This document shows positions 6,990 to 60,232 of a DNA stretch of 64,000 nucleotides, one piece after another. How positions within the stretch are numbered: position 1 is the first letter of the stretch; each line of letters begins with the position of its first letter. The position numbers and the translations under genes were made by a program. The notes below the pieces were generated by a model. That model had not been told where the DNA came from. It worked only from the letters and a program-made list of their open reading frames with translations, and did not search any database. The DNA is from Botryllus schlosseri. Its lineage: Eukaryota. The stretch covers positions 21,886,001-21,950,000 of the forward strand of contig CM119376.1 in assembly GCA_051294905.1 (NCBI GenBank). The letters are read 5' to 3'.

Positions 6990-9825
6990 CGGACATCAGA
7001 CATGTGTACACAATACAAAATAGTCTACGACCGGAATAACCATGTGCGGATCAGTTAACAGACATATTCCAAGGTAAAGCTCACGCTGGTACGTTCGGCT
7101 ACGTTTTTTAAATATTGTCTCTGGTGGTCGTATCGAGAACACGTCAGTAGAATATGTTCGACAGTTTCTGGTACGGTGCATGTTTCGCAGAGACCAGCAC
7201 TGTCGTGACAACTAATGCGATGGGGGTGCGAGTTCAATTTACAGTGTCCAGTTTGTAGTCGCAATATAATTGATACTTCCCTCGGCGACAAATTTTGTGG
7301 TTGGAGAATGCATGAGAACGGTGCGTGCATACGAATGTCTCAAGTACAGTCTCGACCGATGCCGTTTAATTCCGACATCCACTTTTCAGTACATATTCCA
7401 TTGGTGTACGACTTCATTTCGGCAAGTGACAGAATCATTTCATTTTCGTCGTTGGGTCCAAGTGTGCTAGCGACAAGTTTTGCGAGTTTATCCGTCCTTT
7501 CATTGCCACGTATTCCTGTGTGAGCGGGAACCCAAATAAACGTTACTTGTACTCCATTTTTGCAAGTTCTCTGCAAAGTAAGATAATAGCTTCAATTAAA
7601 CTATTTGAATTGCTATTGTTTTCTATTGAGTTCAATGCGCTTTGACTGTCAGAGAATATCGCTAACTGTTTGGACGGCATACATGCGTTGCTCACCTAAT
7701 TTAGACTTAACATAATTGCGTATAACTCAGAGGAAAATATTGTTTGTTTGACGTTACACGCAGCCCAATGATAATATTGAAATACTTTGACCCAAAATGC
7801 TGCACTACCGCGGGTATTTCTTTTCGATCCGTCGGTGTACTTTCGTATAAGTCCGATAGCGCGTCGCTATGTAACGTTTGCATTCCTGGATTATATATTC
7901 AGGATGGTGTGCCCCGGAGGTGATCAGCGTCAATTGAAAATCGACAACAAGCTGTTGATTCACCCAAGGCGGCAATGTACTCGGTTTCCTCGACTGCAAA
8001 ATAATATTTTGAATAGAAGCGGATCTGGTTTTCATGCGAAACATTATAAACTGAGGCGAGTCGGGAAAAATGCATGCCAAGATTCTCGAGTTAATGATAT
8101 GCAGAGGTGGTTTAGAGTTGCCAGAATAATATTGCGGTACTTAGCAGGCTTGAAGCCGTCTTATGTGAATTGGTGGCTCATCGCAGGAATGCTGCAGGGC
8201 GTAAACTGTCGCGTAAACAGATTCTCAGAGCTGCGTTCTGAATTTTCGGTATTGCTTGTATGATGAAGATTGGCGAAAATAAATAAGCTTCACAGCCCTA
8301 CTCAATGACGGATCTAATTAGTGCTCTATAAACAGCTAGAAGGCGAGGCTTGCTCGCACCCCATGATGTCCCGCTTAATAACCTCAAAATGTTCATTCTT
8401 TTAATACATTTCCCCACGACCGCATCCTTTTCGGGACGGTACGACAGGCGCGAATAAAAGTTGATTCCAAGATATTTATGTTGCTTATTGATTGAGAGTG
8501 GAGTACCTCCTATCTGAAGGTTCACTTGCAGTAGTTTCATACCCTTGGAGGATATGACTGCATCAGTGTTGGGATCAAGTCACTACCTTCGAGTCACGAG
8601 TCATCTCGAGTCATTGCAGATTTTGACTCGAGTCAAGTCAAGTCAATCGATTTTCAAAGGTGACTCGAGTCAAGTCAAGTCACTCATTTTTTGGAGGTGA
8701 CTCGAGTCAAGTCGAGTCAAGTCAAGTCACGAGACAAGCCACAAGTCAAGTCAAATTGAATTTTCGAAGTATGAGTGATGATTCAAATTCATTACAATTT
8801 GCTAGCTGTGTGAAAGACAGATTAATTAAGCATTTATCTTAATCAAATAACGAATATCTAGTTGAATATGCATGCAAAAAGACGGTAGACTATATCCCTC
8901 ACGCACACATAGAACTGCTAAGTAGTACGTGAGTAACTGTACGGCTATACATACTACAGTCAGTTCTTATCAGCCAAAATATAGGACCTAATACGAAACT
9001 TCGAGAAGTTGAAACAAAATGATATGGTACAATTGCCTACACTACTTATCTACACTTCCATGAGAATATAAACGCACCCAATATATTCGTTCGATTTGAG
9101 GATTGGTAAATGTGAACACTGGGCAACGTAAGCATTGAGCCGTCTAAGAAAAAGAGACACATTGCTATTTAGATTAATTTTCTACATTTCGGTCAATTTA
9201 TTTGTGATCGTACAATGGAGGAACCTTGTAACGTACAATCAGTGGACTGGTTGTTCTCACAAGTGCCACCGACGTATCTCGAATAATCCGAACATCCACA
9301 AGATACAGTGATTTATTCGACACCCCTTACTTGATGACTTGAAATTGACTCGTAAATTTTGCTCTGAGTCACGAGTCAATGCACATTTTTGAAGCTCCAA
9401 GTCAAGTCAAGTCAAGTCATTTTTCCAAAGTGACTCGAGTCAAGTCAAGTCATACGAAAAAGTTGACTCGAGTCTGATGCGAGTCAAGTCATGACTCGAG
9501 TCATCCCAGCACTGGACTGCATAGCTGATTTCTTTCACATTAACACGAAGTCCCCATTTCGTTGCCCACTTGAGCACTTCATCCAAGGATTTTTGCTGTG
9601 ATTTCGGTATATATTGATTTGCATCGTCCGCAAACAGATTTATTGTGCTGTTGACTGCTGTGGAAAGATCATTAATCATTACGCTAAATAAAGTCGGACT
9701 TAACACACTACCCCGGGGAGTTCCATTTTCTATAATGTAGGTATTGGATAGATTCTGTCCTACGCGTACTTGGCAAGTGCGGTTGCTGATAAATGAATAT
9801 ATCCATTTTAAGATGTAGCCGGTGT
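6990..9825 (-). mobile_element. 5'-truncated I-clade LINE (family A): RT C-half, RNase H and CCHC finger, pseudogenised
   Basis: Minus-strand peptides ENGTPRGSVLSPTLF, LFADD, KYLG, WVPAHTGIRGNERTDKLAK, CETCTVPETVEHILLTC; co-linear with the + copy at 33340-35707. Confidence 0.9.
8564..9514. mobile_element. Non-autonomous hAT element with GACTCGAGTCAAGTC subterminal arrays, inserted in the LINE
   Basis: TIRs CAGTGTTGGGA / TCCCAGCACTG; perfect TSD GACTGCAT at 8556-8563 and 9515-9522; LINE sequence rejoins across it. Confidence 0.92.
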
Positions 9826-12380: not shown

Positions 12381-12683
12381 CTTTGGTTGAAATCAGTGAC
12401 GTGCAGTCAGGTGAGGCAAGTAAAGGGAAATTGTGAAAACCTTGATAATTTATTAATATTTAGCCTACAGTCGATGTTCATGAACAACTAAATTTGAACG
12501 TTTTTTTATCCATCATCGCCAATTTCCATATTTATTGTTCAAAAATATAGCGCAAAAGGAGAGATGATACACAGATGAGGCACGATCCACCTGCGACAAG
12601 AGTGTGAAATTAGCTTTAATACGTACAACGGAAGCGCAGGGAAACATTACCTAGGCGAACATGCCTCACTGACTACTCGCTAC

Positions 12684-13042
12684 CAATCAATCAATCATTT
12701 TTATTAATATTTTCATCATTTCAAAACACCACAAAACTGCGATACAATGAAAAGATGGGAAGGTGTCGAAACAACTTGGAGTAGTCTTTGAGATCAGACA
12801 CCCTCCTTGGCCTGGGCGAAGTAAAAAAGGGGCATGCACACTGAATGAAAAGTAAAGCAGAGAATATAAAAGGCAAGCTACAAAATGAGATGAAGGCGAG
12901 ATCGATGTTTTGTCGTGATCCGGTAATCCTGACGGCAGAAATTGCGTGTATTTCGACTTGAATGCGCACATGCTCGATGACTGTCGGATAGCCGGCGAGA
13001 TGCTGTTCCACAATTGGGGTCCGGCATACTTGATAGATCAGT
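12684..13042 (-). mobile_element. CR1/L2-group LINE 3' fragment with (ATTG)n tail
   Basis: Minus-strand ORF end WNSISPAIRQSSSMCAFKSKY and 3' UTR co-linear with 24385-25048. Confidence 0.8.
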
Positions 13043-42944: not shown

Positions 42945-43942
42945 TAGGGATGGTGTGAACCTCTGAAAGGTTCAGGCTCGTGTGAACGCGAACCTTTTTG
43001 AAAGGTTCTGTGTGAACACGAACGTGAACCTCGTGACGTCACGTGACGCCATATTGCTAATTCCAACCCTATCTTCCAATGCAGTGATAGCCTATATTAA
43101 TGTACACGATACCTAGCGAAGACTCGGTCCACATGATGCCACAATGCGGAAGTACATATCGGCGTTTTAAACATCGCTAAATGTATCAACAGCGGTAATC
43201 ATAGGATATAATTATTGCGTAAAATCAATACATTTCGTCGCTTTGCCAACAACTTCGACGAGGACTTACCAAGGAATATAAGCTTACGCCTTATCGGTCT
43301 TAGCCAGACCGGGCAATGTGTTCGGAGTCTGCGTATTGCTACATTGATATTGAGCAGAGTGCACAACGGGTTTTTATACTCGCTACCGATACCACAAATA
43401 ACAACAAGTTATGCAGCAGTAGCAAGCACCTTAATCGCACGGATTTGGTATTAATGATACAGTAAAGATATGAAGTCAAGATTGACCCCGTACGCCTGTT
43501 CGATTTTTTACATCAGAAGACGATATTAATGTCATTGATTGGTTGAATAAGCATCATTCGCTAACTACGTATATCGCTCGTGATGTTGTGTGATTGCGGG
43601 TCAAGCTCACAGCAGACAGTCACTAAATATTCACAAACGGAAAGCTTGTTATTCCGAGAAAATTTTTGCAACAAAGCAACTAAAACTTTTAGGGTTGTCG
43701 AGGTGCATGGTGCATGCTCGTTAAGCGTTGATTTTTTATGCTGCCAGCACCATGCATGGAGTGGACCGCAGTTGAAATGCAATAAATTTGAGCCAAAGAT
43801 CTTATAATGGAGTGAAAATTACAATTTACCAAAAGGTTCACAGTGCAGAACCTACCAAGGTTCTGTTGTGAACGCGAACCTCTAAATTTCCGAGGTTCAC
43901 ACACAGAACGCGAACGTGAACCTCACGTTCACACCATCCCTA
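42945..43942. mobile_element. hAT non-autonomous element inserted in LINE B
   Basis: 16-bp TIRs TAGGGATGGTGTGAAC / GTTCACACCATCCCTA; perfect TSD CCAAAATC at 42937-42944 and 43943-43950. Confidence 0.95.
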
Positions 43943-45327
43943 CCAAAATCCATCGTCTTTGGCGACTTCAATGCGCATCATTGGTCGTGGAGTCACCAAA
44001 CGAACGAACGAGGGACTAAACTTTTTAATGTCCTCGATCACGCAAACTTAGTCATGTTAAACTCTTCAACTCCAACACATATCAATCTCGCGAGCAATGC
44101 TGTTAATCGTTGGTCATTGCTAGATTTAACACTCACTACTCAAGATATAGCCGCGAGATGCCAAACTGAAATATCTTCGTCGCTGCTAGGAAGTGATCAT
44201 TTCGTAGTATTCACGAAGTATATGACAAACTCGGCGATAACTTCCTTTTATCGACCACCATCGTGGTCTCTCAAGAAAGCCAATTGGAAGAAGTTCTCCC
44301 GAATTGCAGATGAAATGATCGATTTGTCCGATCAACGAGATGTTGAGTCTGCAAATACTATTCTAACAAAATGCATAACGACAGCAGCGAATCGATCAAT
44401 ACCAAAGACAAGGAATATGGACAAGAAATCTGTCCCTTGGTGGAGTCCCGAATGTGAGAGAATGATTCGTAGGAAAAGAGCAGCATATTTAAGAATGAAG
44501 CGCACCTTTGATATAACAGACGTTATAAACTTCAAAAAGGCCAGGTCCGCATGCAGAAGAACTATACTCGAAGCAAAACGCTTTTGCTGGGAGTCTTTCT
44601 GTTCCTCGCTGAATAATAAATCACGTTTAAATCACGTATGGCGGGTTATTCGTAGCATCGCTGGTACGACAGCGCATCAGCAAATTCCTCATATCCCAGT
44701 AAATGAAGTTGATCACATCGAAGACACGTCAAAAGCAGAAATAATAGGCGAGCACTTCGCTACCATAAGCAGATCCGATAACTACGCTTCGAATTTCCTC
44801 CTTTCCAAGAGTCAAGGTGACCAACATGTTACATCGTGTCTACCTTTCAATGTGAATCTGGAAGATCCAATGAATGCGCCGTTTCAGATGTCGGAACTTA
44901 GGGAGGCACTACAGAGTCGGAAAATCTCTTCTCCTGGACGGGATTCGATAAATTATCAAATGCTGCAAAATCTTTCGACGTCCGCCCAGACCGAGCTTCT
45001 TAAGCTATATAACATTTCATGGAGAGATGGAAAATTAGGAACTCCTGCACCAGACGCCGTCCTTTACTCGTACATGTGATTCACTATCTATTTAGTGTTT
45101 CACATGTATTTTTTATCTAAACTCAAGTGTTTCCCCATGAACATCGATATTACGTATACATTTTAGGGCTTATAATACATGAATTCCATATAGAATCAAA
45201 TGCAACAAGCAACCAATCTTCGCGGTACTACTTTTAAACATCTAAAGCAGATTCAAACAAGAAAAAAAAATATTTAATATTTTTCAATTTTATTTTTAAA
45301 TTTAACTACTTTTTGCCCATGACTTTA

Positions 45328-48300
45328 TGCGCAGTTCGGTCGTGTTCGTTTCACGATCCCGTGCGCGAGTCGTATATGTGAGTTAGGGATAGGGCCTTCA
45401 CACAAAACCACGTCCGAATTAAACGATTGCAATAGAGTTAATCCCAGTTTTCGGAGATCGCATGAGTCCATTTCTAAAGCTGCTCCCCGAATATATTTAT
45501 AGCTTGGCTCTTGTATGCTGAGGTGTACATACCTCCTACCCATACGCCTGAGTTCGCTATTCATGATTTGTATGGCTCTGGTACGTGTAGTCATATGATA
45601 CAATTTGTCGTCATTCAAGTTCTGTTCATAATGAGGGGGTTTCCCGACTGCATGGCCAATGGCCATGTATGGCAGCCAACCCCTCATCCAAGACTACCGC
45701 TCTGATACAGCCCCGCATGGCCTCTTTTAGGGTTGTAGTCGGAATATCCTGGCTCAACTCGTCCTTTAGGAGTTGTTGCACGTATTCCGGAGGCCTATAC
45801 GAAGATTGGCAAGTTCAACTGCTCGGTTGCATAGCCGTTCCAATTCTGTCTTCACTTTCTTATCAGTTCCATCATACAGTTCATACGTTTTTATCGGGCC
45901 GCGACCATGTCTATAGAGGCCGTGGCGCGGTTTTGATGTCGGTGGAGAGAGGGCGAGGGTGTCTGTATTCAGTGGGGCTTCCACACTCGATTTTTTCTGC
46001 CTCTGAAGGGGCTGCGTGCCCGCATCCAACTTCACGCCGGCGGTTTCAACGCCCGACGGGGGCCCTTTTTCTGGAGAGGCTTGCATATCGCCTCCAGACT
46101 CTTCTTCATCCACAAAATTTGTAGTGTGGATGTCGACAGCTGCTTTCAATGCAATCTTCTCGGTATACGGCACAACTGCTGCGACCATGGGGCCGTCGTG
46201 AACGATTCCCACTCTTCTATTGTGGCGAATGCAGTGGCCGTTGTTTTCAGGAATCTCTTGAACATGATGTTCCTGAGAGGTGCTAGCGGGGCTTCCGCGC
46301 TCAGCACGCAAGGATTTCGGGGTCACAGCGCTCACCCGACTTAATTTTGTATCTGTGGTTCCTCCACACTTGGCGCAAAATCCTTCCGAGAGACAGGGAC
46401 ATCTTTGGTCCCGAGGGGCGTCAGCTGGGCTTCCAGTCTCGACGCTGTGTAACGTTGCAGCTTCCACCGACCCATCACCAGTAGCAGCGTTGCAAGTACT
46501 GCTTCCAGCTATGGTTTTTGCCGCGTCCGAATACATGGACAATGATAGTTCATATTTCACTGTAGTGGGATCCTTCAATTCTGTCGCTACTGAGGGTAGC
46601 CGTTGAACTTGCTCAATCCATTTCAGTCCGATAATGTTTAACGGGACTCCTTCAGCAGTTGCAAACGGAACCGGTAGGTTGTCCAGCTTGATGATGACGA
46701 CAAAGTCGACACTGGATGATCCTCCTATATGCCGCGTAATTTCATATCGAGTGGCTGTCTTTCAGTCCAGCTTTCTGGGTAGGTAGCTTTCACAGCATCT
46801 TGGGTTATCAGGTTAGGAACACTTCCTGTATCCGCAAGAAATTGTGCACCTGTTTTTGTGTCTGGGTGCTCGAAATCTGGCTTGCCTCTTGACTGCTAGA
46901 CGGCGTCAACTGCGAATGGTCCACTCCGACGCCCGAGTCTTGAGTCTGCGGAAGGCCGCGTCCCCTCTAGTCTGAAGCTGGAATTCCCGGAGTCGTTCGT
47001 ACGTTTTGAGAGTTTCGCGACTGCTGGCCGTTGTTTCTGCTCGCGTCGGGCTGTCTTCCCGACCTTCCTGGGACCCTCGATCCCGTCTGCCCCCCGGGTG
47101 CAGCACTCCTTCGATAGGGGTTTCCACCAGCCATCACGGCATTAGGAAAACGGTTTGTTTTGGCTGTACGATCAGGATTTCGTCGCGGCGGTGGATTACG
47201 ATTTGGTACCGGGTATTGCTGACGTCCGGTTGCTTGCGCAGATTGGGGAGGCCTGCCGGCCGGCAGGCAAGCAGCCCCGGTGGTTGCACATTATAGATAT
47301 GCACTGGTGGTAGGGGTGACATAGTGTCAGCATTTTTTCCTTTACCCTCTTCTTGATCATCCTTTTAGACTGCTTCTACTTTTACTATGCACATTTTAGC
47401 TACTCAGAAGTAGACAGAAGATTTGGAATCGGGTTGTTTTAGTTTTAAATATGAAACTGTCATAGCAGGAACTTGCTGAAATACCCACATTAAGATAGGA
47501 GCCAAATACATTTTTGAATGGTGCTGTTTTGGTAATGTCATTTATAACATGACATTTATAACATTTTGCAAAGTTACGAATATTCATTTTGCAATTTCCA
47601 AAGCAACCCCTTGTAATTTACTGCTACAAGCGGAACCTCCATTGAAATATACTTTTTATTTAATTATTTATTCTATACTGGAAGTAGATACTTCTACTTC
47701 TACTAGAGTACCAATGCTCATGCTGATAACATTGACCGCATCTAGTGTCGGGCCATCCGAGGTATCAGGGAATGTACATAAAATAGAGAGGATTTATTTA
47801 AAATTTAAATGTGTTCTAAATCGGCCAGGAAATTATACTTCGTACTCTTGACTGCCGGATGGGGTTATTTTCATTGCGTTATAGCTTGAGTCTCTCCTCT
47901 CGAACACGTTCGGCTGGTCAGTGGCGTTTCGGGCGAGCTTTTTTTCTGTTCCATGATATCTTCTTTGCTGCGATGTGTTGCTTTGGACTACTGGATTCCG
48001 CGTCCAGTCCTGACGCTGCCTCCAACGTATGCTTTGTGTTTTTGTACTTGAGATGCTCAGTGCTCACGCTCACACTGCCGAAAATCGGAAATTCGGCTAA
48101 TCGTCCACGTATAAGGTCCTGGTACGAGATGTCGGATGTGATACCGTCTGCTTCTGCCGTGAACTTCTCAATTTGGCGTTATGAATCCATAGGTGAGACG
48201 AGGAAACGTTAGGGGTTGTGTACCGATTGGCAATTGCAGATAGGAGGGTGCTGATCGACAATTATTCGTCTCCAGACTCTCCCCCGTCCTCTGGAACTAC

Positions 48301-48500
48301 CGGGAAATGACATTCAACGCCGGAAGAAACGGTTGGGACCTCCAGTTTTTTATAGTGTAGCCCCAAAACGATTGCTTTGCGGGTAGTCTACACTCGGTTC
48401 AATTTACTTCACAGTGTTGAACGTCATCCCAGTTCGTTACGCTTTCTTCAACCCCTTTACGCGCCTTGTTGGTGATTGGTGGCGCGGATTGAAGTATTGG
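45328..48500 (-). pseudogene. Decayed gag-like region, retropepsin-type aspartic protease and an unrecognised C-terminal region
   Basis: FLADTGSVPNLIT (DTG at 46832-46824) and LNIIGLKWI (about 46640-46615); upstream low-complexity R/P/G/Q-rich stretch and weak gag-like PEDGESLET; no RT motifs follow. The gag assignment is much weaker than the protease. Confidence 0.6.
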
Positions 48501-49267
48501 CTGCAGCTTGATCGAAGTAAGCAATGACCTTTCCAGGCCCAGAGGCTCATAATAATCAATATATGATTAAAATAAATCTTAATACAACCAAATACTCCAA
48601 TCAGGTCGTGCAGATAACAATAGGGCTTCTCTATGCACATTACACATACTGATAAAAACCAGAAGTTAACCTATTTATCATCATGCACGATCTAAAATCA
48701 AAATAATTCTCCAAGGTTTGTTTTCACAATAGATGTGATGGCCTTTCCTGCCAGATACATAATATGCAAGTGATATGCCAGTAGATGCCCACAAAAGTAT
48801 CAACACTCAGAGTCCAAGCCAACCAATTGGCAGATCACCAGTTCATTCATAAAAGTATCACAGTCTTTGCAGATTGCAGGTGTGTATATGTATATACCCA
48901 TTTTCAGTTGAGGCATTGATTTCTTGTTGAGTCGTTTCTTCAAATTCTTTCGTGTCATATTCGGGGACAGGGAATTCCATCAGGATACGGGGGTTCGTGC
49001 GGGGCTCTGTAGTAGCGAGATTTCAAATTCCATATATCTCGAATACTGTTCTGGTTCGGTCCATCAGTTCATCGACTTCATGGACCTGTACCGACGCATT
49101 TATTCGCACTGCTTCATTTCTGTGTACCTTACAACTGTGGCTAGCAGGCGATCCTATCAATGTATGCTTGAGAGCCTTTACGGGGACATCCGAACATCAC
49201 CCTATGAGCCCAAATGACGTCAGACTCTTTCAATGCCGTCGTCAATGTTTTGTGGATGTTCTGCTTC

Positions 49268-49291
49268 GGTGGTGGTGGTGGTGGTGGTGGT
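49268..49291. repeat. (GGT)n microsatellite
   Basis: Directly visible run of about eight units. Confidence 0.9.
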
Positions 49292-52200
49292 TGAACTTGG
49301 CATCCAGGCTGCCTACATGGGTAACAATTGTTCACAGCAGCTGCTATACAATTCGTGTGGGCACCACATGACACATAGATATAAAATGCATACACTAATA
49401 TAAAATAACGGCAACACTTACTGCAAAAGTTCGCATGCACGAAAAATGGTGGCCCCATTTAATAGCAGCACGATCGTAAAACTGGCATGCATACGACAAT
49501 TCCATATAAGCATCACTCTAATTTCGACACATTTGTATCGCAAACCATAGGTTTCAGTTCCGTACTGGTGATGGAAGGGCTACGCCTCACTATACATAGA
49601 CACGCCAATCAGATTATCCAGCCAAGCAAATATACCACAAGTTATGGCGAGCTCATTCCAATCAACCATCCGAAACTGCCCACTCTTTTCCAATCTTTAG
49701 ATTTTGATGGTATTTAAGTTTTTTATATATCATGACCAGGCAAGCTATTCCCTGCTAGGCATAATACTTATATACTTTTATATTTGATTTTCGATTTCAG
49801 GGTCCATCCACTCTTACATAGGGGCGGGAGGATATAGCCCAAATCTGCATTTACTCATATAGGCTCGACTCCAGTGTCAAGAATGCCATCGTCTTAGCTC
49901 AATGAACACAGCTATCGTGCCAAATATGGCGCCCTACTTGTGATATTATTCTTGACCAAGTATTATTCAGCATTACTTTCATCGAATTCTCTCTATATGG
50001 AAGGCAACAGAATTATAATTATATTATTTAACACAAGCAAGATAGGGTGGTTACATATCTGTCGCTTTCGCAACGGCATATTCCTTATTATAGCAGCTTC
50101 GTATGGGTAGCTAGGTGATTCATAGATCACCCCTAATCGTTTCAGTTACTATAGCCTTCTTCATAATCTAGACATTATGGTGCTACCTTCTTAGCTTTTA
50201 GGTGGGGAGGTAGACCTTATCGGAATCCTAATGAGACCGTGTCGATTTCATTAATATATACATAACTACATAATTGACTCATATCATCATTATTTCATTT
50301 TTGTTAGTACACTGATATATCACAAAACAAGCGAATTCCAAGCATTCCGTTTACAGTACATATATTACACCATTGCTATACATTAGGTAGTACATTTGTA
50401 GTGCTTAGGGTATATGCATTATAATTCTCAATTAATAAAATATCAGTCGTTATTTTTAGGATTAGCTAGCTTCAGGTTTGCAATTAAAACTAGCATCATT
50501 TTTTTCAATTACAATACATGATACAAAATTATGGAAATTAACATATATAACTATAGTAATCTACAAAAGGAATTTCAACTCAATCACGGCAATCTACCCA
50601 GCATTCACCTTCAAGGTGAGATATTCATGTCCAGTCCAGTTTTATTTCCCGAGTTGACGCGTATGCAAAACTCTGCACTACGGCATTCAAAAGGGGGTAT
50701 AAATGATTCTCTTTGCCTAAATAATTGTCTTAAAAAAAACTTTTTTGTTGGCCTAACAGGCTCATTTTTTTGGACGAATATATTTATATATAATTATATT
50801 TTTTTGTGAAAATTTTATCTTTTTCTAATCGCCATAATGTTAATGTTCTACATACATGCATCAATTTTTATTTTTATATCATTTTCATTTTCTGACGGAT
50901 ACCACAAAATATTTACAACGAAGTTACTCCCCCTTCTTTTAATTAGCGGAGGTTGCCATGAAGCCAAGCTATTCCCTAGTGTCAAGGCAGTATGGAGAAT
51001 CTGAGCATGGTTTTTCCTCAAACAGAATTATTTATTTTTCAAATGGCGACTAGGCGCAGCGTCTGGTAATCAAAGTGCGCTGCCTCCCTTTGGGAGTGGG
51101 GGTAATAAAGGGCATTATGATTACACTCAATTCAGTATAATAATAGTATCTCTACAAACAAATAGGTTAGTGCGCAGTCGGACTAAATATAAGCCGATCA
51201 CTACAAGTATCATGATGACAAAATGCTCGATACCAACTGCAAACAATTAGAATAGTACATAACTCATTATTAGCCAATCAATAATATCATATGTGCGCCA
51301 TAAATTACATTTATAGATATGAAAGGTTAATTCATACGGGTGTTGACACAGAAAATATTTCGTCTCAAATAGGGGAAGTGTCACATAAATTCAAACCTTT
51401 AGGCAGGGTAGTTCGGCGTTGTTTCTGGTAACTAACGCCATATCGCGTTGCCACAAATAGGGATCATTAACAGAATTTAAACACGAAAAGTAAGGCATAT
51501 ACCAACATATAGGTTTATTGTCCACCCTGGCTACGGGGTGTATTCAGTATTATGGGGTGTTTTTGTATAGGATCTCCAATTTGCTAGATCAATTAAGACT
51601 AAATACTATTAGCACGTTTACTGACCAATTATTTTCTTTTAACCTGTGCTAATACAGCAGAGCTTACGCAAAGTGTGGGAACGTCATAATAGTGTTACAA
51701 GCTGGCGAGTATTTCTAATAATAGGGAGTCACATTGGTTTCAAAATATATCACCATCTTTGAGGCGCAATAGATTTTGAGTCATGACAACTCTTGTGCTT
51801 AGCCAAATAAGTAGGTGGTTCTGAGCATGCCGAGTCGGGTTTACAAAAGCGTTATCAACCACAATGATCCGTTGCACTATGTTAGCTGATCAGTATACAG
51901 ACTGGGTACCTGGTTATCCTCAACAGGGAACGAGCACAGATTTAAATGTTGGGAAATCGGTAGTGTCAATAATCACGCATGCGCAAAACTGCTAAATTGA
52001 GTGAAGCCCTAACATATATAGAGTAGAGCCTGAAGCATTAGAAATTGTAAAGACAAGTCGATATGACGCAGCACCAAAATCGCATGCACATTGCACAATG
52101 CACATTCATCAGATACCGTTCCGAAAACACACTATATGCCTACGAAAGTGTAAAGGCATAAGCATTATTTATTCGATTTTAGCCATGCACGAAGCTTGCT

Positions 52201-55200
52201 ACAAGTGAGCACCAAACACTGTGGAGTGCGGATAATAGACATTCCATGAAAAAGAGTTACGCACCGCAAGCCAGATTACTCAAACATCATTGTAGCCCGA
52301 GCAGAATTTAGCAATACTGAATAACGAGTTGATTTTGAACCGCGTATTTCAACCAATTTCAAATCACTTATCACCGTTTTAAACGCCTTGCACATATGTC
52401 ACGGACTATAGCGCTTTTCAAGCGTATCGCATCCGCACACTATTTTAGGCAATATATTGATCGGAACAGAGATTATTAGCTCGGGGGCAATGAATGCGTA
52501 TGTTTTGGCTTGATCATAGGTTATAAGTGCGCCACCAATATTTTTACGGAAGGTCTACATCTATTTGGTAGCGAACTTATTGAAATTGTGCATAGGCTTG
52601 ATAATTACCACTAGCTGACGCCGTGAATCTAGTGTTGTTCAGAAAAGTTTATGGAGCTGACACAGAATCAACTTTGGCGAGATCTAGCGCAATTCCACTT
52701 GCGTCACGCACGATTTAATGCGAATTGATTTTACGACTCCAATATCGCAGTGTCGTGTAATCTGATCCCAACAGCACAAATGCGAGCCGCAGAAGAAAAT
52801 CAGGTGATCCATAAAAAATACGAACTTGGAATTGGGTACGTCTCTCGAAAGAGCGTCGTTTATGGCACGCCTAGGCGAGTCCAACATTTCGACAATCCCG
52901 ATGTGAGGCCAAGAAATCAAAGCATGCAACGAAATGACCAATATTAGGGCGACCATTCTTTGATATACATGAGAAATTCAAAAATTATATCGTTGGTTAA
53001 AAAAATTTTCAAAATTCTGTACGTAATTCAAATTTGCTTTGCAAACAACATTTCGTTTCTTACGTAGAGATTGCAGCGGCTGTGACCCTATCCTCTCGCT
53101 TTTTTAGACCACACCCTGCAGCCTATTTTAGGGTCTTATGTTTTCCCAAACTTACGCCCATAACGTAATTCTGAATCTGAAATTTGACGGCTTGACGGAC
53201 ATTGTTTCTCATAGTACATTGGTGTTTCGCGACATCTCAGCAAAAGTGTTATTAAGTTGCGGTCTTTAAAATACGATGTTCGACAACATGGTTGGTATTG
53301 TTGCCAAGGTATTTCGTAAGGACAGCTAGTTCCAACACAAAATGCAGAGACCAACCTTATTTGAACAATGCCTAATTTAAATACTTGAATGCAAAATTTT
53401 GTCAAGATTAAACTCTTAATGTTAATGAATGCAAAAATTATGCATTTATTTAGTGCAAAATCTACCGTTTTTAAAAAAAAAAATCAATAACAATTGTCCC
53501 TCCCAAAGATACATCATCATTAATATTAGACACCAATTTTCAAAGACTTACGCTCATTGATAACAATGATGAATCACACCATAGGGGTCAGGAAAGGACA
53601 AATACTATATAGCAATATCTGCAACTACAAATATCAATGACGAAATTCATATATGGATTCGATAAATCGCAGTATTTACTCATGACATGACTTCTCTCGG
53701 TGCGCCCAAGCCGATACGAACAAACACATTAGTCCTTACTTCATCGGACACGGGTCTTTTAACATGGGATATCTGGCGTCCAGTTACTTCACAACCGAAC
53801 ACTGGAATACGGCAGTAGGCTATATTAATAAACAGAATATGGCCATACAAAGAGAAAAGTTGGCCACCCCTGGTTTAGGGAGTATAGGGATGCTCTCAAT
53901 ATGCGTCAAATCAAATTCAAACCGAGGCCGTAAATTAGCTGCAAATCAAAACATGCGTATGCACCATTATTTATTATACCGTTATTACATTTGGATTTCT
54001 AAGTAACACGACACATGATGCCACCTTCCTTAATTATACGATCTAGTTTTAATAGCCACATCGTTACTTGGATAGAAATCGGATTAAAGATCTTGATATA
54101 CACATATTTCCCAATTCTGAAATTTAGGCTTGTTGAAGCGACTTGCTTGCAACCGAGAACCTTGATTTCGCCAAAATATTTCAAAGTCTTGATCTAAACC
54201 CGGCCATGACGCAATTCTGAGCGTCCCAAGAAAAATTGAAAGTAACGCCCATGTAGGAATTTATGACGTAACAATTGAAGTTACAATTTAGTCACTGTTT
54301 CCATGCACAGTCAAGTTCAAATCTTGTTCGTTGCCCGTGTTACGACATTCAATCTATACCCTTGTTTCAAGCCAAATCAGTTAACTCCTCTTTAGGGAGG
54401 TGACTCAAGTCAATTTCTTAGTCAAATCAACATAAATTTCCAAAATAGAAGACATGACTCAAGGTCAATAGATTTTGCAGACAAATTAACCCAATACGAT
54501 GGACTGCCGATCCATTTGCGAGTTAGTTTACCAATTTAAAGCTTGTTCCAATCATAATGCACAACAACATGCTCAAATTGCATATTTGTTAAATTCAAAT
54601 ACTATAGTGGGACGGTTCCAAATCTTATAACAGGCTCACATAGAAACTCTGGTCAAGGTGAATGGCGATAGCACACTATGGTAAAGTCCTAAATTACAGA
54701 ACAATTAGGCCATCCAACACTATTATACTCGCAAGACCGCTTCCCCAGTTATGAAGGAAACATAGCACTTACTGTTATCACCATTAATTAAGACGTATAC
54801 AAAATAGTTCATCGCGTGTACGGCTCTAAAGCACACGCACCTTGTTGATTCTGAAAGCTAAAAGAGTAGATGTAAGAATAGCCTTGTGAGTTGAATCGAT
54901 AATTTCACAATAGTGCAGACTGCCTAGTGCCCATACATCTGATACAGGATTCCTTGCTCGAGTTACGATACTCACTTAGATATTGAAGCGATTCTGATCA
55001 CTCTATGTTTTTATTTGATGTAGCTGACCTCAAATCTTTGCTCATATATATACGCAAAACAAAATAATTTTCCAACAGGTAAGTAGTTTTCAACCCATAG
55101 TTATCTCGGTCTCGTAGCTATGTAGGCTATATCTAGACCAGGCTGATCCATTCCAAGTCCTTATTCTACGTCTACTTGTAATGATAGGACAATACGCATA

Positions 55201-57109
55201 ATACCAATGGTATACATTAGTACATAAAGACGAGTACAGGAATATACAGTCATACACACATATGAATGTGAATAAGTCAACCTCAGTTTCTCCAAGCTTT
55301 CATCTGAGTATAACTATAAAGATAGACGATTAGGTTGTTATCTAACTACAACCTAAGTATATACTGATGAAGAAGTTAACGTACAAATGCTTATATGCCT
55401 TCAGAGTAAGGAATTGCGCCATCGTTAAAAGGGTTTGGTGGAGGACAAGATAATCGTTCTGCTATTTTGCGAAGTCAATTACCGTACCCAGCGCCCCAGG
55501 AAACTGTCACGAAAACTACTACATTCCTACATAAGAAATTAGTATCCGGATGGCCAGTGGTATTTCCTTTCCAGAAATTGCACGTTGCAGTAGTACCGGA
55601 ATGTTTCTACTCTCACGGCATGCCGTGAGCGCTTGCCTTCCACTTATGACCCTCCCAAAAACCGCACACACAAAAAGAATATTACAACATGGGTTTCCCA
55701 TATTTAGTGGTGGAGCGTTTTCGCCGCGCACGCGATAAGAATGACATAAGGCAGAACATTAGCTGCAAACTCGATTTTGCAGTACTTTGTTAAGACACGA
55801 TTGCCGTCACAGATTTATTGCCCGTACTACACAGACTTGGCGCATAGCAGTATAAATATTACTCCGGTCTACTGCACGAAACCTGCGAACTATATCAGTT
55901 TTTGCCCCGTTTTCTAGAATACGATGGTGGCGTTACTAACTTACCAACAACGACAATCCGAGCACAAAATCGCAGTATCACGTTCAACGATTACAGTATG
56001 ACGTATTAAATTAATATGTTTTACACACTCCGTGTGGCGATTTCCATGGAGGAAATCATTATTTAAAAATTTACATTTTGATCGAAATATGTTGGGCAGA
56101 ACAAGTACTGCCTCGACCATGCAGGATCGTTACCCAGGCCGGATGGCTGGCACCATATGCCTTGTACGATTTAAACTTTAACCGAGGTGATATTGAGTTT
56201 CGCCATGCGTCCAAAAAGAACTAGTGAACCAAGGGAATTATCCTCACAACCAATTTATAGCAAGCAAGCAAGCATTCATGTATCAATTTAGCCCACGACC
56301 GCAGAAACGAGTGCGACACTTTTACAAATAGTTTAATCAGGCCGATGAATGATAATGCCGAGGTAAAGTGGACTCACGTCACAATGGTCAATTCAAGTTA
56401 AGAGCCTTTATTAATTGGTAAACGGGCGTCCGGAAGTTAAAACCGAATTTAGAGAAATTACAGATCTTACGCGTAGAGGCAATTTACTGCCTGAATACCC
56501 AGTATGTGCATGTGCGCCAATACTTTTGCATTTTAACATTCAATATTACCTCACGTGTACGTACAGCCTCATTGCGCGATGTTTGCATCACTTTTGTCAT
56601 TACGGAGTGCTTTATACCGCACGCAAATGACGATAGTAACTATCGCATTTAATTCTGATCTATCGTATACGGTCAACCATAGACGGGAATGTCAAAGTCG
56701 ATTTAGCGTCGCGGGCCGGACCAAAACCTTGATCGTTTGAGCCGGCCCAGTCCAATCAAGCCTGATATCTACCTATAAAACTAGACATATGGTCATAAGT
56801 TCAATTTAAAGTTCATGCACACAGACGGATTACAGAAACACGGGCTCTATTCTAGCAATACGTTCCCGAGAACACATTTTCGAAGCAATCATACTATCGG
56901 GTTGTTGTTCTTTTCATGCTAGTCGTTTTCCGAGTAATGACCTAAGATGTCCAATGTCCATATACGTCACTAGTAATCGCTATTATGCCTTTCAATCATT
57001 CCGCGCTTGTGTGTTTATTGCGTTAACGAGACACCATCCACATTATCATTATTAATACAACAATTATGGTAGCTTAGGTAACATTTTGAAACTACTCCCA
57101 ATTGCTCAC

Positions 57110-57389
57110 CACCGATGAAAGGTTTCTTACGATGTATGTGTTCCCCTTCATTTGTGATACTTTCGAGATGCTCGTCATGTAGCTGGTTTTCTTTAGCGAT
57201 AACGGTAAAGCTGAGGTCAATTGACGTATATTTCGTGGTGCAAAATTCGCGTGATTCAGGGGTTGTCGTAGTCAGCTCCTGCATCGAGTCGCCCTTCTCC
57301 GTTCGTCGCCATTCGATTGACATGATATTAGCTCGGTCGGGAAGAAAACCGGAGTGGTTGGTATATATACTTTTGCCGAAGTCCGCCAT
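57110..57389 (-). CDS. Candidate first coding exon of an unknown gene inside the 12.9-kb insert
   Basis: TTTCAG acceptor near 57424, ATG in gcaATGG context at 57389, open frame MADFGKSIYTNHSGFLPDRANIMSIEWRR..., possible GTGAGC donor at 57109; no homology recognised. Confidence 0.3.
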
Positions 57390-57958
57390 TGCGTCACCAA
57401 CAATTTCCACGGGTGCAGGTTACCTGAAACGAACTGCTTAAACCATAAAACATGTCGCCATTTTAGATTTACATTGCTATATGTGAAAAGCACATTCTCG
57501 TGGGGACTATATCTGACCGTCAGTTCCAGGCGTGTCTGTTTAGTTCAGTTCTGTTGTGATTGGCGTCTGTTGCATGAATAAACTCCCACATTGTTGATTC
57601 GTCGTATTGGTATGTTCGATATTAAGACGACAAAGTTACACGTATTTGTATGATATTTCCTTTTTAACCGAGCGCATAATGTTGCCGGCATGCCTCTGCA
57701 CAAAATGTTACATTTTTAGGTTTGAAGGTTTGTTCGCAAGCGCCCACTCCAGTCGTCATTTCTGGATATGGCAAATCCACGTTTTAACATCCTAGGGCTT
57801 ATAATACACCTGTTCCATATGGGTCGTACTACTCAATCCACCCGCTAATTCCCATTTATGTGCAACATTTACACTTATATAGTGCAACACTTCAATATCT
57901 ACACTCAGTGTTCCCATTATACCCCGTTACTATTTACGGCCTTTTCTACACTTGTACT

Positions 57959-60232
57959 GAAAATTACCTAAATCCTGGAAACATGCTGTAGTAGTTCCTA
58001 TCCTAAAACCACGAAAGGATCCTTCTGAAGCGGGATCATATCGACCCATCTCATTGTCCAGCCATCTTTGTAAGGTTATGGAAGTGATGATAGTAAATAG
58101 ACTTCAGTGGTTTCTTGAGGCGAACGATCTTCTTCATTACTCCCAGTCGGGTTTTCGTCACGATCGCAGTACCCTAGACCATATACTTCGCCTACACGAC
58201 ACCATATATAAGGCACTGAACAATCAGAGATCAGTAGTTGCAGTTTTTCTCGACATCGAGAAAGCCTACGATATGGTATGGCGAAATGGTTTGCTCTATA
58301 AACTGTCTGCCCTCGGCGTACATGGGAGGTTGCTGAAATGGATATCAGATTTTCTGCGTGACAGATCGTTCTCGGTTCGCATTGGTTCTTCGCTATCCAC
58401 CCCATTTCAACTTGAAAATGGTCTTCCGCAAGGAAGCTCTATAAGCCCCATCCTCTTTGCAGTAATGATAAATGATTTGGCACCACATGCAGGTGGGAAA
58501 TGGTCTCTTTGCTGACGACTGTGCAGTATGGGACAGTGAGTTGTCGTTAACTGACGCAGTGGCGGAAGTTCAAAAATCATTAGACGTGATACACAGATGG
58601 TGCTCAGATTGGGGTTTCAAGATCTCTACTGACAAGTCAATTGCAGTGATATTCACCAGAAAAATTAAAGTTGGTCATCATACGCTAGATTTTGGTGGAG
58701 TTCCGTTGAGATTTGAAGATAAAGCGAAGTATTTGGGAGTCACATTTGATAGAAGACTAACATACAAATATCACATTGAAAATATTGCCTCGAAATGCAC
58801 AAAGCGATTGAATATGATACGACTCCTAACCGGCACTTATTGGGGGGCAAGTCGATCTTCTCTGTTACAGTTGTATCGAGCGATGATTAGGAGTACAATC
58901 GATTACGCAATGCCAGCATACTTTTTTGCCGCGAAAAAACATTTGGATGGACTGAATATAATACATAATCAAGCTCTGAGGCTCTGCTGCGGTGCAATGC
59001 GAAGCACTCCGATTTGCGCTTTAGAAGCCGAATGTAACGAGGTGCCACTTCACACCCGTCATTTACACCTCTGCCTTAATTATCGCTGTTTTCTTCTGGC
59101 CCATTCCGCCGACAACAATCCAGCATCGGAATTATTAGATGATACCTGGCACGAAATATACGGTTTGACAAATCCAAAATTTCGAACTTTCAACCTTATC
59201 TCAAAAATCGACTTGCTCCAACAATTCACAATAGATACGTATCGACACACAACTGTGCAACCATGGAAAATTCCTGTTCCCTGCGTAGATTTTCATCTAC
59301 TGCATTCCAAGTGGTCCGATACTTCATTTGAACAGTTACGTCAGAATTCCTTGTCATATATAACAGAAAAATACATTGGATACGACCATATTTATACGGA
59401 TGGCTCAAAAAACGACTTCGGAACGGGATGTGCAGTGTATATCCCAAACCACGTGTCGATAACCAAACGATGTTCCTTGTATTCGTCAAGCTTCACAGCT
59501 GAACTAACTGCTATCTCCGAGGCACTGAAGTGGATTTTAGAAAACGGTTCGTATGACAAGAAATATTTACTACTGTCGGACAGTTGCAGTGCATTGCAGC
59601 ATCTACAAAAAGCGCGTTTCCGAAGGATGAGTAAAGTATCAAATGAAATTTCAACTAATCTACTTGAGCTTAAATTCCAGAAAATACATATTATCTTCGT
59701 TTGGATACCAGCACACGTCGATATTAAAGGCAACGAGACGGCAGACCAATTGGCAAAGTCCGCAGCAACGTCATCTGAAGGGCGGAATCCTACAAATACA
59801 GTTTTGACAAGGCATGAAGCTAAGCAAGTCATACTGAAATATTGCAAGCAAATTTGGAACCAACATTACCTCGAAGAAGATAAAGGCTCTCATTTCAAAC
59901 TTTTTCGTGAATCCCTTCATCATAGTACACCAAGTCTTGAAAATCGCATTTGCGACCGAATATTATTTCGATTGCGCTCAGGTCATTGCGGACTGAACGC
60001 ACACTTGTTTAAGATTGGAATCGCACCATCGCCACATTGTAGCTCCTGCAATGAGCCTGAGACGGTTGAGCACTTTATGTTAGACTGCCCCTCGCATGAA
60101 TTTCATAGAACGTTCCTGCGCCGTGCTTGTGTTTGTATGAATATTCCATTTCGCCTCGTGAACTTACTAACAGATCCAAGCATTTTAAAATACGTGGTAG
60201 AATATGTGCTGAGTTGTGATCGATATATTTGA
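57959..60232 (+). pseudogene. LINE B ORF2, 3' part (RT, RNase H, CCHC), one frameshift near 58500
   Basis: YRPISLS, QSGFR, FLDIEKAYD, PQGSSISP, FADD, KYLG, YTDGSK, WIPAHVDIKGNETADQLAK, CSSCNEPETVEHFMLDC. Confidence 0.93.

Follow-up and report, generated by a model that had tools for sequence, protein, structure and literature searches.

The window analyzed here is a 64,000-nucleotide stretch of the Botryllus schlosseri genome (C6:21886001-21950000 of a 495-Mb assembly), and our subject is a large insert within it (C6:21931038-21943958) that interrupts open reading frame 2 (ORF2) of a long interspersed element (LINE). The flanks of the insert belong to one LINE, with the endonuclease on the left and the reverse transcriptase (RT) and RNase H on the right, and the octamer GAAAATTA abuts the insert at both edges as a repeat that extends in neither direction. 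Removal of 45038-57966 rejoins ORF2 in frame (...NISWRDGKL followed directly by PKSWKHAVVVPILKP...), yielding 556 open codons that run from the endonuclease into the RT. This confirms a first-pass annotation of the window, made without database searches, which had described the insert as splitting ORF2 with an exact, nonextending 8-bp repeat. The host LINE (43916-45037 and 57967-60232) is itself decayed: its frame shifts after the 556 codons, and the RNase H part (58472-60232) lies in a different frame.

The termini of the insert match none of the common end structures. Within 45038-57958, we found neither a pair of long terminal repeats (LTRs) nor any long direct repeat, and a poly-A tail is absent from both ends. 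No long terminal inverted repeat (TIR) was detected, local alignment of the left end with the reverse complement of the right end scoring no higher than shuffled sequences. The earlier statement that the insert has no LTR pair, poly-A tail, Helitron ends, or hAT-like ends thus stands, and its description as TIR-less holds for long TIRs and has to be amended for short ones. The two tips (left, GGAACTCC...; right, ...CTTGTACC) form a weak inverted repeat, matching at 13 of 23 positions in the window's copy and at 14 of 23 in other copies (binomial p ~0.003). Of nine short copies, eight have GG at the start of both tips, as do the long copies described below; the right tip in the window has T where the others have C. 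Slightly further inside, a direct repeat of 34 bp joins the two subterminal regions with an alignment score of 40, above all shuffles (maximum, 31).

The ends of the insert recur throughout the genome. Searches with the terminal 300 bp returned 21 matches for the left end and 23 for the right (68-100% identity), which pair on the same strand, nine pairs being 12.6-14.4 kb apart and about six others 21-32 kb apart; altogether, ~20 copies reside on at least 14 contigs. Each of eight compact copies starts with GGAACTC and stops with CTTGTAC plus C, and their 8-bp target-site duplications (TSDs) are cgggtttc, aaaaagtg, aaagattc, caactctc, aaatataa, tttttccc, aacacatt, and aaagtatg; that of a 31.6-kb copy on C2 is aagatttc. 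An exact 8-bp TSD is present in 10 of the 10 copies checked, in ten different sequences. Because nine further copies, one of them long, share identical start and stop bases, the element boundaries are exact, and because the base preceding the left duplicate assigns the final C to the element, the TSD is 8 bp rather than 9 bp long. Variable 8-mers of fixed length imply a staggered cut by a transposase-type enzyme and exclude site-specific recombination and one-off capture. The insert is a genuine mobile element and a member of a multicopy family, in line with the expectation of the first-pass annotation that a terminal-sequence search would, for a DDE-type insertion, recover the ends at other loci with variable 8-mers.

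Identity among nine aligned copies is 89-98%, and the family comprises ~18 defective copies versus 2 that bear a transposase. Several copies of 21-30 kb (C16, C1, C11, and C5:27.86 Mb) consist of the short-type interior plus later insertions. Two copies form an inverted pair 29 kb apart, C12:26532204-26545268 (+) and C12:26574676-26587849 (-), each with its own TSD; they differ by 0.6-2.2% at both ends and by 10.9% in the middle.

The two long relatives sharing both termini with the insert, C8:10238111-10263819 (25.7 kb) and C2:26488578-26520238 (31.6 kb), provide the enzymatic context that the window's copy lacks. A genome-wide search with PF12762 located an IS1595 domain at C2:26519049-26519450 and C8:10238908-10239300, in both cases 0.8-1.2 kb from the right end of the long copy and on the sense strand. 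The corresponding 341-residue frames, in loci L017 and L020, match DDE_Tnp_IS1595 (E 1.4e-10, above the cut-off), and in L020 this frame begins 258 bp inside the right end. The enzyme carries an N-terminal Cys cluster and invariant DE..HLAKRR and TD.YPSY blocks, which we take to contain the first two catalytic acidic residues of the DDE triad. Compared between the two long copies, the transposase differs at synonymous sites (pS, 0.15) far more than at nonsynonymous sites (pN, 0.018), and the resulting pN/pS of 0.12 implies that the gene has been maintained by selection within the element lineage. At the opposite, left ends of the long copies, matches to PF01885 (Tpt1) lie 0.45-0.75 kb from the terminus, the one on C8 within a 1171-codon frame; in L004, the left end of the C2 long copy, RT_RNaseH_2 (E 2.9e-18) is followed by Tpt1 (E 1.3e-8). 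No rve domain was found in the N-terminal part of pol or, in L004, between RNase H and Tpt1. The C2 long copy is embedded in a tandem satellite, the ~50-codon unit of which (MSKYANISLSTIAREKLLRAIDVTFRVIQSD...) is open on both strands and occurs on both sides (L004:51-1494 and L017:1786-3063).

The association of the two genes extends beyond this family. At least 21 loci have an IS1595 match 10-17 kb upstream of a pol-Tpt1 match on the same strand. Among public sequences, the ENA protein P0007 fuses RNase H with Tpt1, and five short Logan proteins are relatives of the transposase. The ENA contig ERZ26858995:ctg108616 (L037; 12,025 bp) represents a diverged relative with all frames on one strand: an IS1595 transposase at 120-1073, 37% identical to the enzyme of the window family, further frames of 487 residues (PWP3A-B_C, E 2.5e-11) and 498 residues (no Pfam match), and, after these, an RT-RNase H fragment at 7438-8079. 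In the families with the nearest pol (44-55% identity), the IS1595 domain directly follows pol-Tpt1, ~1 kb downstream and on the same strand (loci in Table 1). The ends of the window family fall between the pol-Tpt1 and IS1595 genes, so that one circular gene order may open at different points.

The window's copy is read on the minus strand, as shown by AT skew and by the longest frames in sister copies, and contains no long frame. We scanned all stop-free stretches of at least 45 codons on the minus strand and at least 50 codons on the plus strand against Pfam, and the sole match on either strand was a truncated Tpt1/KptA. Next to it lies a remnant of the pol N-terminus. It matches the beginning of the 1171-aa pol frame in the C8 long copy (C8:10260312-10261325) at 88% identity; at dozens of other loci with frames of 1150-1250 codons, all ending in Tpt1, the equivalent part shows 38-55% identity to it. 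The 441-codon version of this remnant in sister copies has no Pfam match. Variable sites are distributed over the three codon positions as 84/84/109 in the pol N-terminus and 26/19/38 in the Tpt1 remnant, a bias too weak to be evidence of current coding. An open frame near the right end, of 164 codons in sister copies, was tried as a gene and rejected as a chance occurrence given the lack of a Pfam match, its near-restriction to short-type copies (with partial 60-82% matches at two diverged relatives), and the absence of codon-position bias. In the same neighborhood, an in-frame deletion of ~90 bp (57300-57390 region) sets the window's copy and C12b apart from the other seven copies. Searches for RNA genes were negative as well: the element yielded no Rfam match at E up to 1 and no Ciona-type spliced leader at up to 3 mismatches (the leader of this species may differ), and there are no tRNA genes in the window or in 36 loci examined.

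Table 1. Features of the insert and related loci (window positions unless a contig is given)
Feature	Position	Strand	Remarks
Whole element, 12,921 bp	45038..57958	-	5' end at 57958, 3' end at 45038
TSD, left copy, GAAAATTA	45030..45037		inside LINE ORF2; frame restored once the insert and one 8-mer are removed
TSD, right copy, GAAAATTA	57959..57966		directly after the insert
Left tip, GGAACTCCTG...	45038..45060		arm of weak 23-bp TIR; same start base in every copy
Right tip, ...CACTTGTACT	57936..57958		second arm of weak TIR; final base C in other copies
Subterminal direct repeat, 34 bp	45158..45191	+	partner 57787..57820 (+); 82% identity
Left-terminal 751 bp	45038..45788	-	88.7% in blastn of L004 (C2 long copy); homology ends where RT-RNase H is deleted
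Tpt1/KptA (RNA 2'-phosphotransferase), C-terminal remnant, pol tail	45328..45693	-	PF01885, E 1.3e-5, profile positions 100-142 of 177
pol N-terminal remnant	45769..46761	-	331 codons open; 441 in two sister copies
Counterpart in C8 long copy	47138..47339		C8:10258304-10258021
Candidate primer-binding site, TGGAGGTCCCAACCGTTT	48327..48344	-	first 11 nt perfect complement of tRNA 3' end plus CCA
Single internal LTR, 2.58 kb	48345..50926	-	bordered by polypurine tract and primer-binding site; U5 48345-48576; poly(A) site ~48577
Counterpart in C8 long copy, 93%	48521..50528		C8:10255793-10253780; same order on C2
Polypurine tract	50927..50940	-	AAAAGAAGGGGGAG here; AAAAGAAGGGGAGGGGG then TG in most copies
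Noncoding stretch upstream of polypurine tract	50941..53666	-	collinear with C8:10251089-10253759 and C2:26504378-26507165, 85-93%
Uniform noncoding block, 3.5 kb	54038..57537	-	97-98.5% mean pairwise identity (nine copies); absent from both long copies
Open frame, 134 codons (164 in sister copies)	57018..57419	-	variable sites 10/14/9 by codon position; no Pfam match
Right-terminal 340 bp, including ~first 27 transposase codons	57619..57958	-	blastn of L017 and L020: element positions 12582-12920, 93-95%
Loci with pol-Tpt1 followed by IS1595	C1:24299827-24301269; C12:25767212-25768654; C16:20595233-20596668; C3:617754-619195; C3:30334309-30335751; C1:8887951-8889341

The noncoding part of the element retains a set of reverse-transcription signals (Table 1). 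The polypurine tract (PPT) is the only sense-strand purine run of 12 or more in the element and is conserved across copies. It borders the single internal LTR; each copy, whether short or long, has just one match to this region, which is collinear at 93% with a single place in each long copy. On the other side of the LTR, the candidate primer-binding site (PBS) is identical over its 18 nucleotides in 9 of 9 copies, within a region in which copies differ by ~8%; it belongs to a 37-bp island with 95% conservation relative to the C2 long copy, the only stretch conserved between the two in that neighborhood. The order of PPT, single LTR, and PBS is thus permuted relative to a provirus. The first 11 nucleotides of the PBS are complementary to ...TGGGACCT plus CCA, and the sequence TTCAAATCTCGGTGGGACCT, with ~55 copies in the genome, reads as the T-loop, T-stem, acceptor strand, and U discriminator of a tRNA. 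Many TTCAAATCTCGGTGGGACCT copies are organized in ~150-bp tandem arrays, as tRNA genes are, and this tRNA-like array likely encodes the primer tRNA of the element family. A U at discriminator position 73 presumably indicates tRNA-Thr or tRNA-Cys. Dense TTCAAATCTCGGTGGGACCT arrays of more than 50 units are found at C7:23464931-23482462 and also at C7:23552711-23599021. A different PBS candidate, at 48007-48024, resembles a tRNA-Thr complement but was rejected because no tRNA-like gene in the genome matches it.

Transcription of the family is evident from a public single-cell RNA run, in which ~15,600 reads map to the sense strand of the element at 90-99% identity, with a peak at 48550-48949. 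Untemplated A tails begin at 48577 in 222 of the reads, and the depth just upstream reaches 3562. This poly(A) site lies 232 nt upstream of the PBS, where the R/U5 border would be expected. A second, smaller peak (45150-45549; depth ~195) covers the Tpt1 remnant near an AATAAA and an A-rich run at 45259-45270; its source is a poly(A) site immediately interior to the left tip or else internal priming by oligo-dT.

Comparison of the short and long forms shows what the window's copy has lost. A whole-element DNA search scored 7 of 1097 candidates, and the element was therefore tiled for comparison with the long copies, which placed, among other blocks (Table 1), 50868-53666 at C8:10253759-10251089 with 85-93% identity. 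Relative to the long copies, the short type lacks the transposase gene past its first codons, the greater part of the 12 kb separating the transposase from the PPT, ~1.7 kb directly upstream of the pol remnant, and ~1.9 kb comprising RT-RNase H and the front of Tpt1, with a junction near 45788; in the C2 long copy, RT_RNaseH_2 is the next ORF upstream of the shared left 751 bp. The 3.9 kb at 53667-57618 are absent from the long copies, which means that the short type did not arise by a simple deletion but is a recombinant derivative with multiple deletions. Blocks of this stretch match diverged relatives (C12:5.49-5.51 Mb and C7:22.82 Mb) at 73-83% identity and also, in other families, loci situated 19-23 kb upstream of pol. 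The uniform 3.5-kb block within it is noncoding. Its pieces at 54772-55130, 55745-55903, 56016-56114, and 56372-56571 recur in many other element families with 73-80% conservation, and no open frame was found on either strand within these conserved blocks.

Sequence diversity is unevenly distributed along the copies. Outside the uniform block, copies differ by about 5-12%, and by more near 46538-47537. Across 45038-53537, mean pairwise identity mostly stays at 88-93% but falls to 72-80% at 46538-47537 and rises to ~95% near 49038-49537; over the last 420 bp, it is 92%. Shared variants occupy 15.9% of sites in the left and middle parts versus 2.3% in the uniform block, whereas private substitutions are alike in both regions (0.2-1.1% per copy; 0.93% versus 0.99% in the window's copy). 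The equal load of private substitutions implies that decay since insertion has been uniform and small, which fits the ten intact TSDs. Over five segments, the C15 and C8 short copies differ by 0.8%, 6.3%, 7.7%, 0.8%, and 0.7%, and C12a and C12b differ by 1.8%, 4.7%, 10.9%, 2.2%, and 0.6%; since the distance matrices change topology from segment to segment, the copies are mosaics. The window's copy shows a further sign of this, being nearest to C5 and C10 in its left part, yet sharing a deletion with C12b. The diversity among copies is old polymorphism reshuffled between source lineages, and the reshuffling could have occurred by retroviral template switching or by transposon gap repair. Singleton spectra show no strand-biased hypermutation.

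Taken together, these results give us considerable confidence that the insert is an internally deleted and recombinant copy, itself non-autonomous, from a retrovirus-like family whose insertion depends on a Merlin-type transposase. Its interior, with the pol N-terminus, Tpt1 tail, PPT, LTR, and PBS, is that of a decayed retrovirus-like element and not captured host cargo. Merlin elements are characterized by TSDs of 8-9 bp and TIRs of at least 24 bp with terminal 5'-GG, and TIRs with 12 mismatches in 26 positions are on record (PMC8101967). The Merlin-type transposase probably recognizes the GG tips and inserts the element, and would do so through a staggered cut giving the 8-bp duplication. 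Because the short type keeps the first ~27 transposase codons, the transposase gene belongs at the tip and is not a later nested insertion. Because the window's copy lacks the transposase and RT-RNase H, it must be moved by proteins from full-length relatives. In sense order, a long copy comprises the end, the Merlin/IS1595-type DDE transposase, ~12 kb of unread sequence, the PPT, one LTR, and the PBS; then come an unread stretch at the expected place of gag, a pol composed of an N-terminal domain, RT, RNase H, and Tpt1/KptA with no integrase seen, and the other end.

This layout corresponds to a one-LTR circle, or to a pararetrovirus genome, opened between the pol-Tpt1 and transposase genes. 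The DNA that is inserted may be produced by reverse transcription via a one-LTR circle, a step that we regard as a serious possibility without committing to it; by such an RNA route, a defective copy would need RT, capsid, and transposase in trans. More tentative still is the full scheme in which the family represents a new order of retroelement, with RNA converted into a one-LTR circle that is opened at its abutted GG tips by the Merlin/IS1595 transposase and inserted with an 8-bp TSD. The window's copy would then be the first example of a defective parasite of this order, dependent on trans-acting proteins for packaging, copying, and insertion and reshuffled through retrovirus-style template switching, and the uniform block would be a cis-acting region that these steps require.

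Several observations weigh against this interpretation. The assignment of the enzyme to the ends is suggested by co-occurrence and family hallmarks, and the inverted repeat is weak. The long copies were read outside their middle ~12 kb; the parts read do not show gag or env, the lack of an integrase holds for those parts, and 53667-57618 has no counterpart in either long copy. The PBS match is perfect over 11 nt (14 with a one-base bulge) rather than 18. With respect to the RNA route, coverage tapers ~100 bp inside the left end, and a transcript ending at the AATAAA at 45294-45289 would lack the left tip. Finally, internal deletions and mosaics also arise by gap repair of DNA transposons.

The last point leads to the alternative that the family is a Merlin-superfamily DNA transposon carrying retroviral genes as cargo, much as Teratorn carries a herpesvirus, with the short copies moving as DNA only, through cut-and-paste or copy-and-paste. 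This account shares the insertion enzyme with the interpretation favored here and differs from it in how the DNA is made. The Merlin-type ends, 8-bp TSD, and transposase suit it equally, internal deletions and mosaic copies are the classic products of gap repair after excision, and the RNA coverage seems to end short of the left tip. We nevertheless consider it rather unlikely: the defective copies have lost none of the reverse-transcription signals, and these stand in the correct order, with the PBS unchanged in all nine copies amid ~8% divergence, and the poly(A) site in the LTR is in use. Moreover, the linkage of transposase and pol-Tpt1 persists across families with pol only 38-55% identical, longer than expected of passive cargo.

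The remaining explanations are far less probable. One is an ordinary LTR retrotransposon or endogenous retrovirus, reduced to one LTR by a rearrangement and subsequently copied by LINE machinery or segmental events. It would account for the retroviral pol fragments, PPT, LTR, and PBS; it is very improbable, since the PPT upstream and PBS downstream of a lone LTR are the reverse of a provirus interior, each copy, short or long, has one LTR match, the TSD is always 8 bp instead of 4-6 bp or variable, and there is no poly-A tail. Equally little can be said for another superfamily with 8-bp TSDs or without TIRs (hAT, Zisupton/KDZ, P, Crypton/tyrosine-recombinase, or Helitron elements), to which we assign a minimal probability. 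An 8-bp TSD does fit hAT and Zisupton, and a weak TIR resembles Crypton or Helitron. Yet the Pfam scan of the window's copy returned no KDZ-type transposase (or SWIM, SAP, or Ulp1 accessory domain), Phage_integrase, DUF3504, hAT domain, or Rep/helicase on any stop-free stretch of either strand, leaving the earlier proposals of Zisupton/KDZ and of Crypton or another tyrosine-recombinase element without an enzyme, and likewise the hAT and Helitron readings. The relatives that share the termini encode an IS1595-type DDE enzyme, the tips (GGAAC.../...GTACC) are neither hAT-like nor Helitron-like and are shared with IS1595-bearing copies, a TSD is present whereas Helitrons make none, and the variable TSDs speak against site-specific recombination. 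The first-pass annotation had also left room for a one-off repair-mediated capture. The lack of an intact gene in the window's copy would agree with a single capture by repair or segmental duplication, with the 8-bp repeat as microhomology, an event which is refuted by the ~20 copies with identical boundaries and different duplications on at least 14 contigs and retains practically no probability.

Retroelements are classed by the enzyme that inserts them, whether an integrase, a tyrosine recombinase, or a LINE- or Penelope-type endonuclease. If our interpretation is true, the pairing of reverse-transcription signals and pol with a transposase of an unrelated DDE superfamily would be a further solution to the problem of insertion, and the family would be the second independent case, after Teratorn, of a virus-like genome riding a DNA transposon. 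The window's copy shows that the system supports amplified defective derivatives and that copies recombine freely. In tunicate genomes, large repeats without LTR pairs or evident TIRs can, as it also shows, be annotated by their GG tips, 8-bp TSDs, and PPT-LTR-PBS core, and the Tpt1/KptA in the integrase position and the uniform 3.5-kb block pose testable questions. Literature searches yielded no report that combines a Merlin transposase with a retroelement or Tpt1 with an RT, and none on integrase-less ascidian elements. The insert is thus a large mobile element, as the first-pass annotation had suspected, and of a kind for which these searches turned up no description. Conceptually, Teratorn (PMC5601938) comes closest. 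The present analysis contributes the defective family that has been amplified, the mosaic nature of its copies, the poly(A) site in use in vivo, and the finding of selection on the transposase.

Comparison with known systems places the family between several of them. With Merlin/IS1595 (IS1016) elements, it shares the DDE_Tnp_IS1595 enzyme with an N-terminal Cys cluster, encoded beside one tip in full-length relatives, as well as the 8-bp TSD and 5'-GG on both tips; for Merlin, too, inverted repeats can be very imperfect (PMC8101967). Merlin elements are, however, small and carry one gene, whereas the window family measures 13-32 kb and contains an RT-RNase H-Tpt1 pol, LTR, PPT, and PBS; its inverted repeat matches at just 13-14 of 23 positions, and the window's copy, having no transposase gene, can be at most a non-autonomous Merlin/IS1595 member. 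LTR retrotransposons and retroviruses resemble the family in the RT-RNase H of the long copies (an RT_RNaseH_2 pol as in Ty3/gypsy-like elements), the PPT, the tRNA-complementary PBS, and an LTR with an internal poly(A) site. They differ in that the window family has one mid-element LTR with the PPT before and the PBS after it, a TSD of 8 bp instead of 4-6 bp, and Tpt1/KptA where the integrase would sit, with no integrase seen in pol.

Replacement of the integrase by another recombinase, and repeats that are not a simple LTR pair, are also features of DIRS, Ngaro, and VIPER retroelements, which are thought to insert from circular DNA. These elements, however, use a tyrosine recombinase and generate no TSD, as opposed to the DDE transposase and 8-bp TSD of the window family. 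Pararetroviruses (Caulimoviridae and Hepadnaviridae) likewise lack an integrase, and because their genome is circular, a single promoter/poly(A) region can form the two ends of a terminally redundant RNA, the same principle as the lone internal LTR of the window family suggests. Integration is not part of their cycle, and they have neither a transposase nor defined insertion ends. Like miniature inverted-repeat transposable elements (MITEs) and other deleted DNA transposons, or large retrotransposon derivatives (LARDs) and terminal-repeat retrotransposons in miniature (TRIMs), the short copies have lost genes, kept cis signals and ends, and outnumber their full-length partners (~18 versus 2); unlike these, they keep both transposon tips and a PPT-LTR-PBS core and, at 12.9 kb, are very large. 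Teratorn, a fusion of a piggyBac transposon and an alloherpesvirus (PMC5601938, PMC10175614), offers the closest parallel in overall design, with a virus-like gene set and a transposase enclosed by DDE transposon ends and present in multiple copies in an animal genome. The 2023 Teratorn review (PMC10175614) contains no Merlin or retroviral case among those listed, and the window family differs from Teratorn in pairing a retro-type element with Merlin and in its size of 13-32 kb versus 180 kb.

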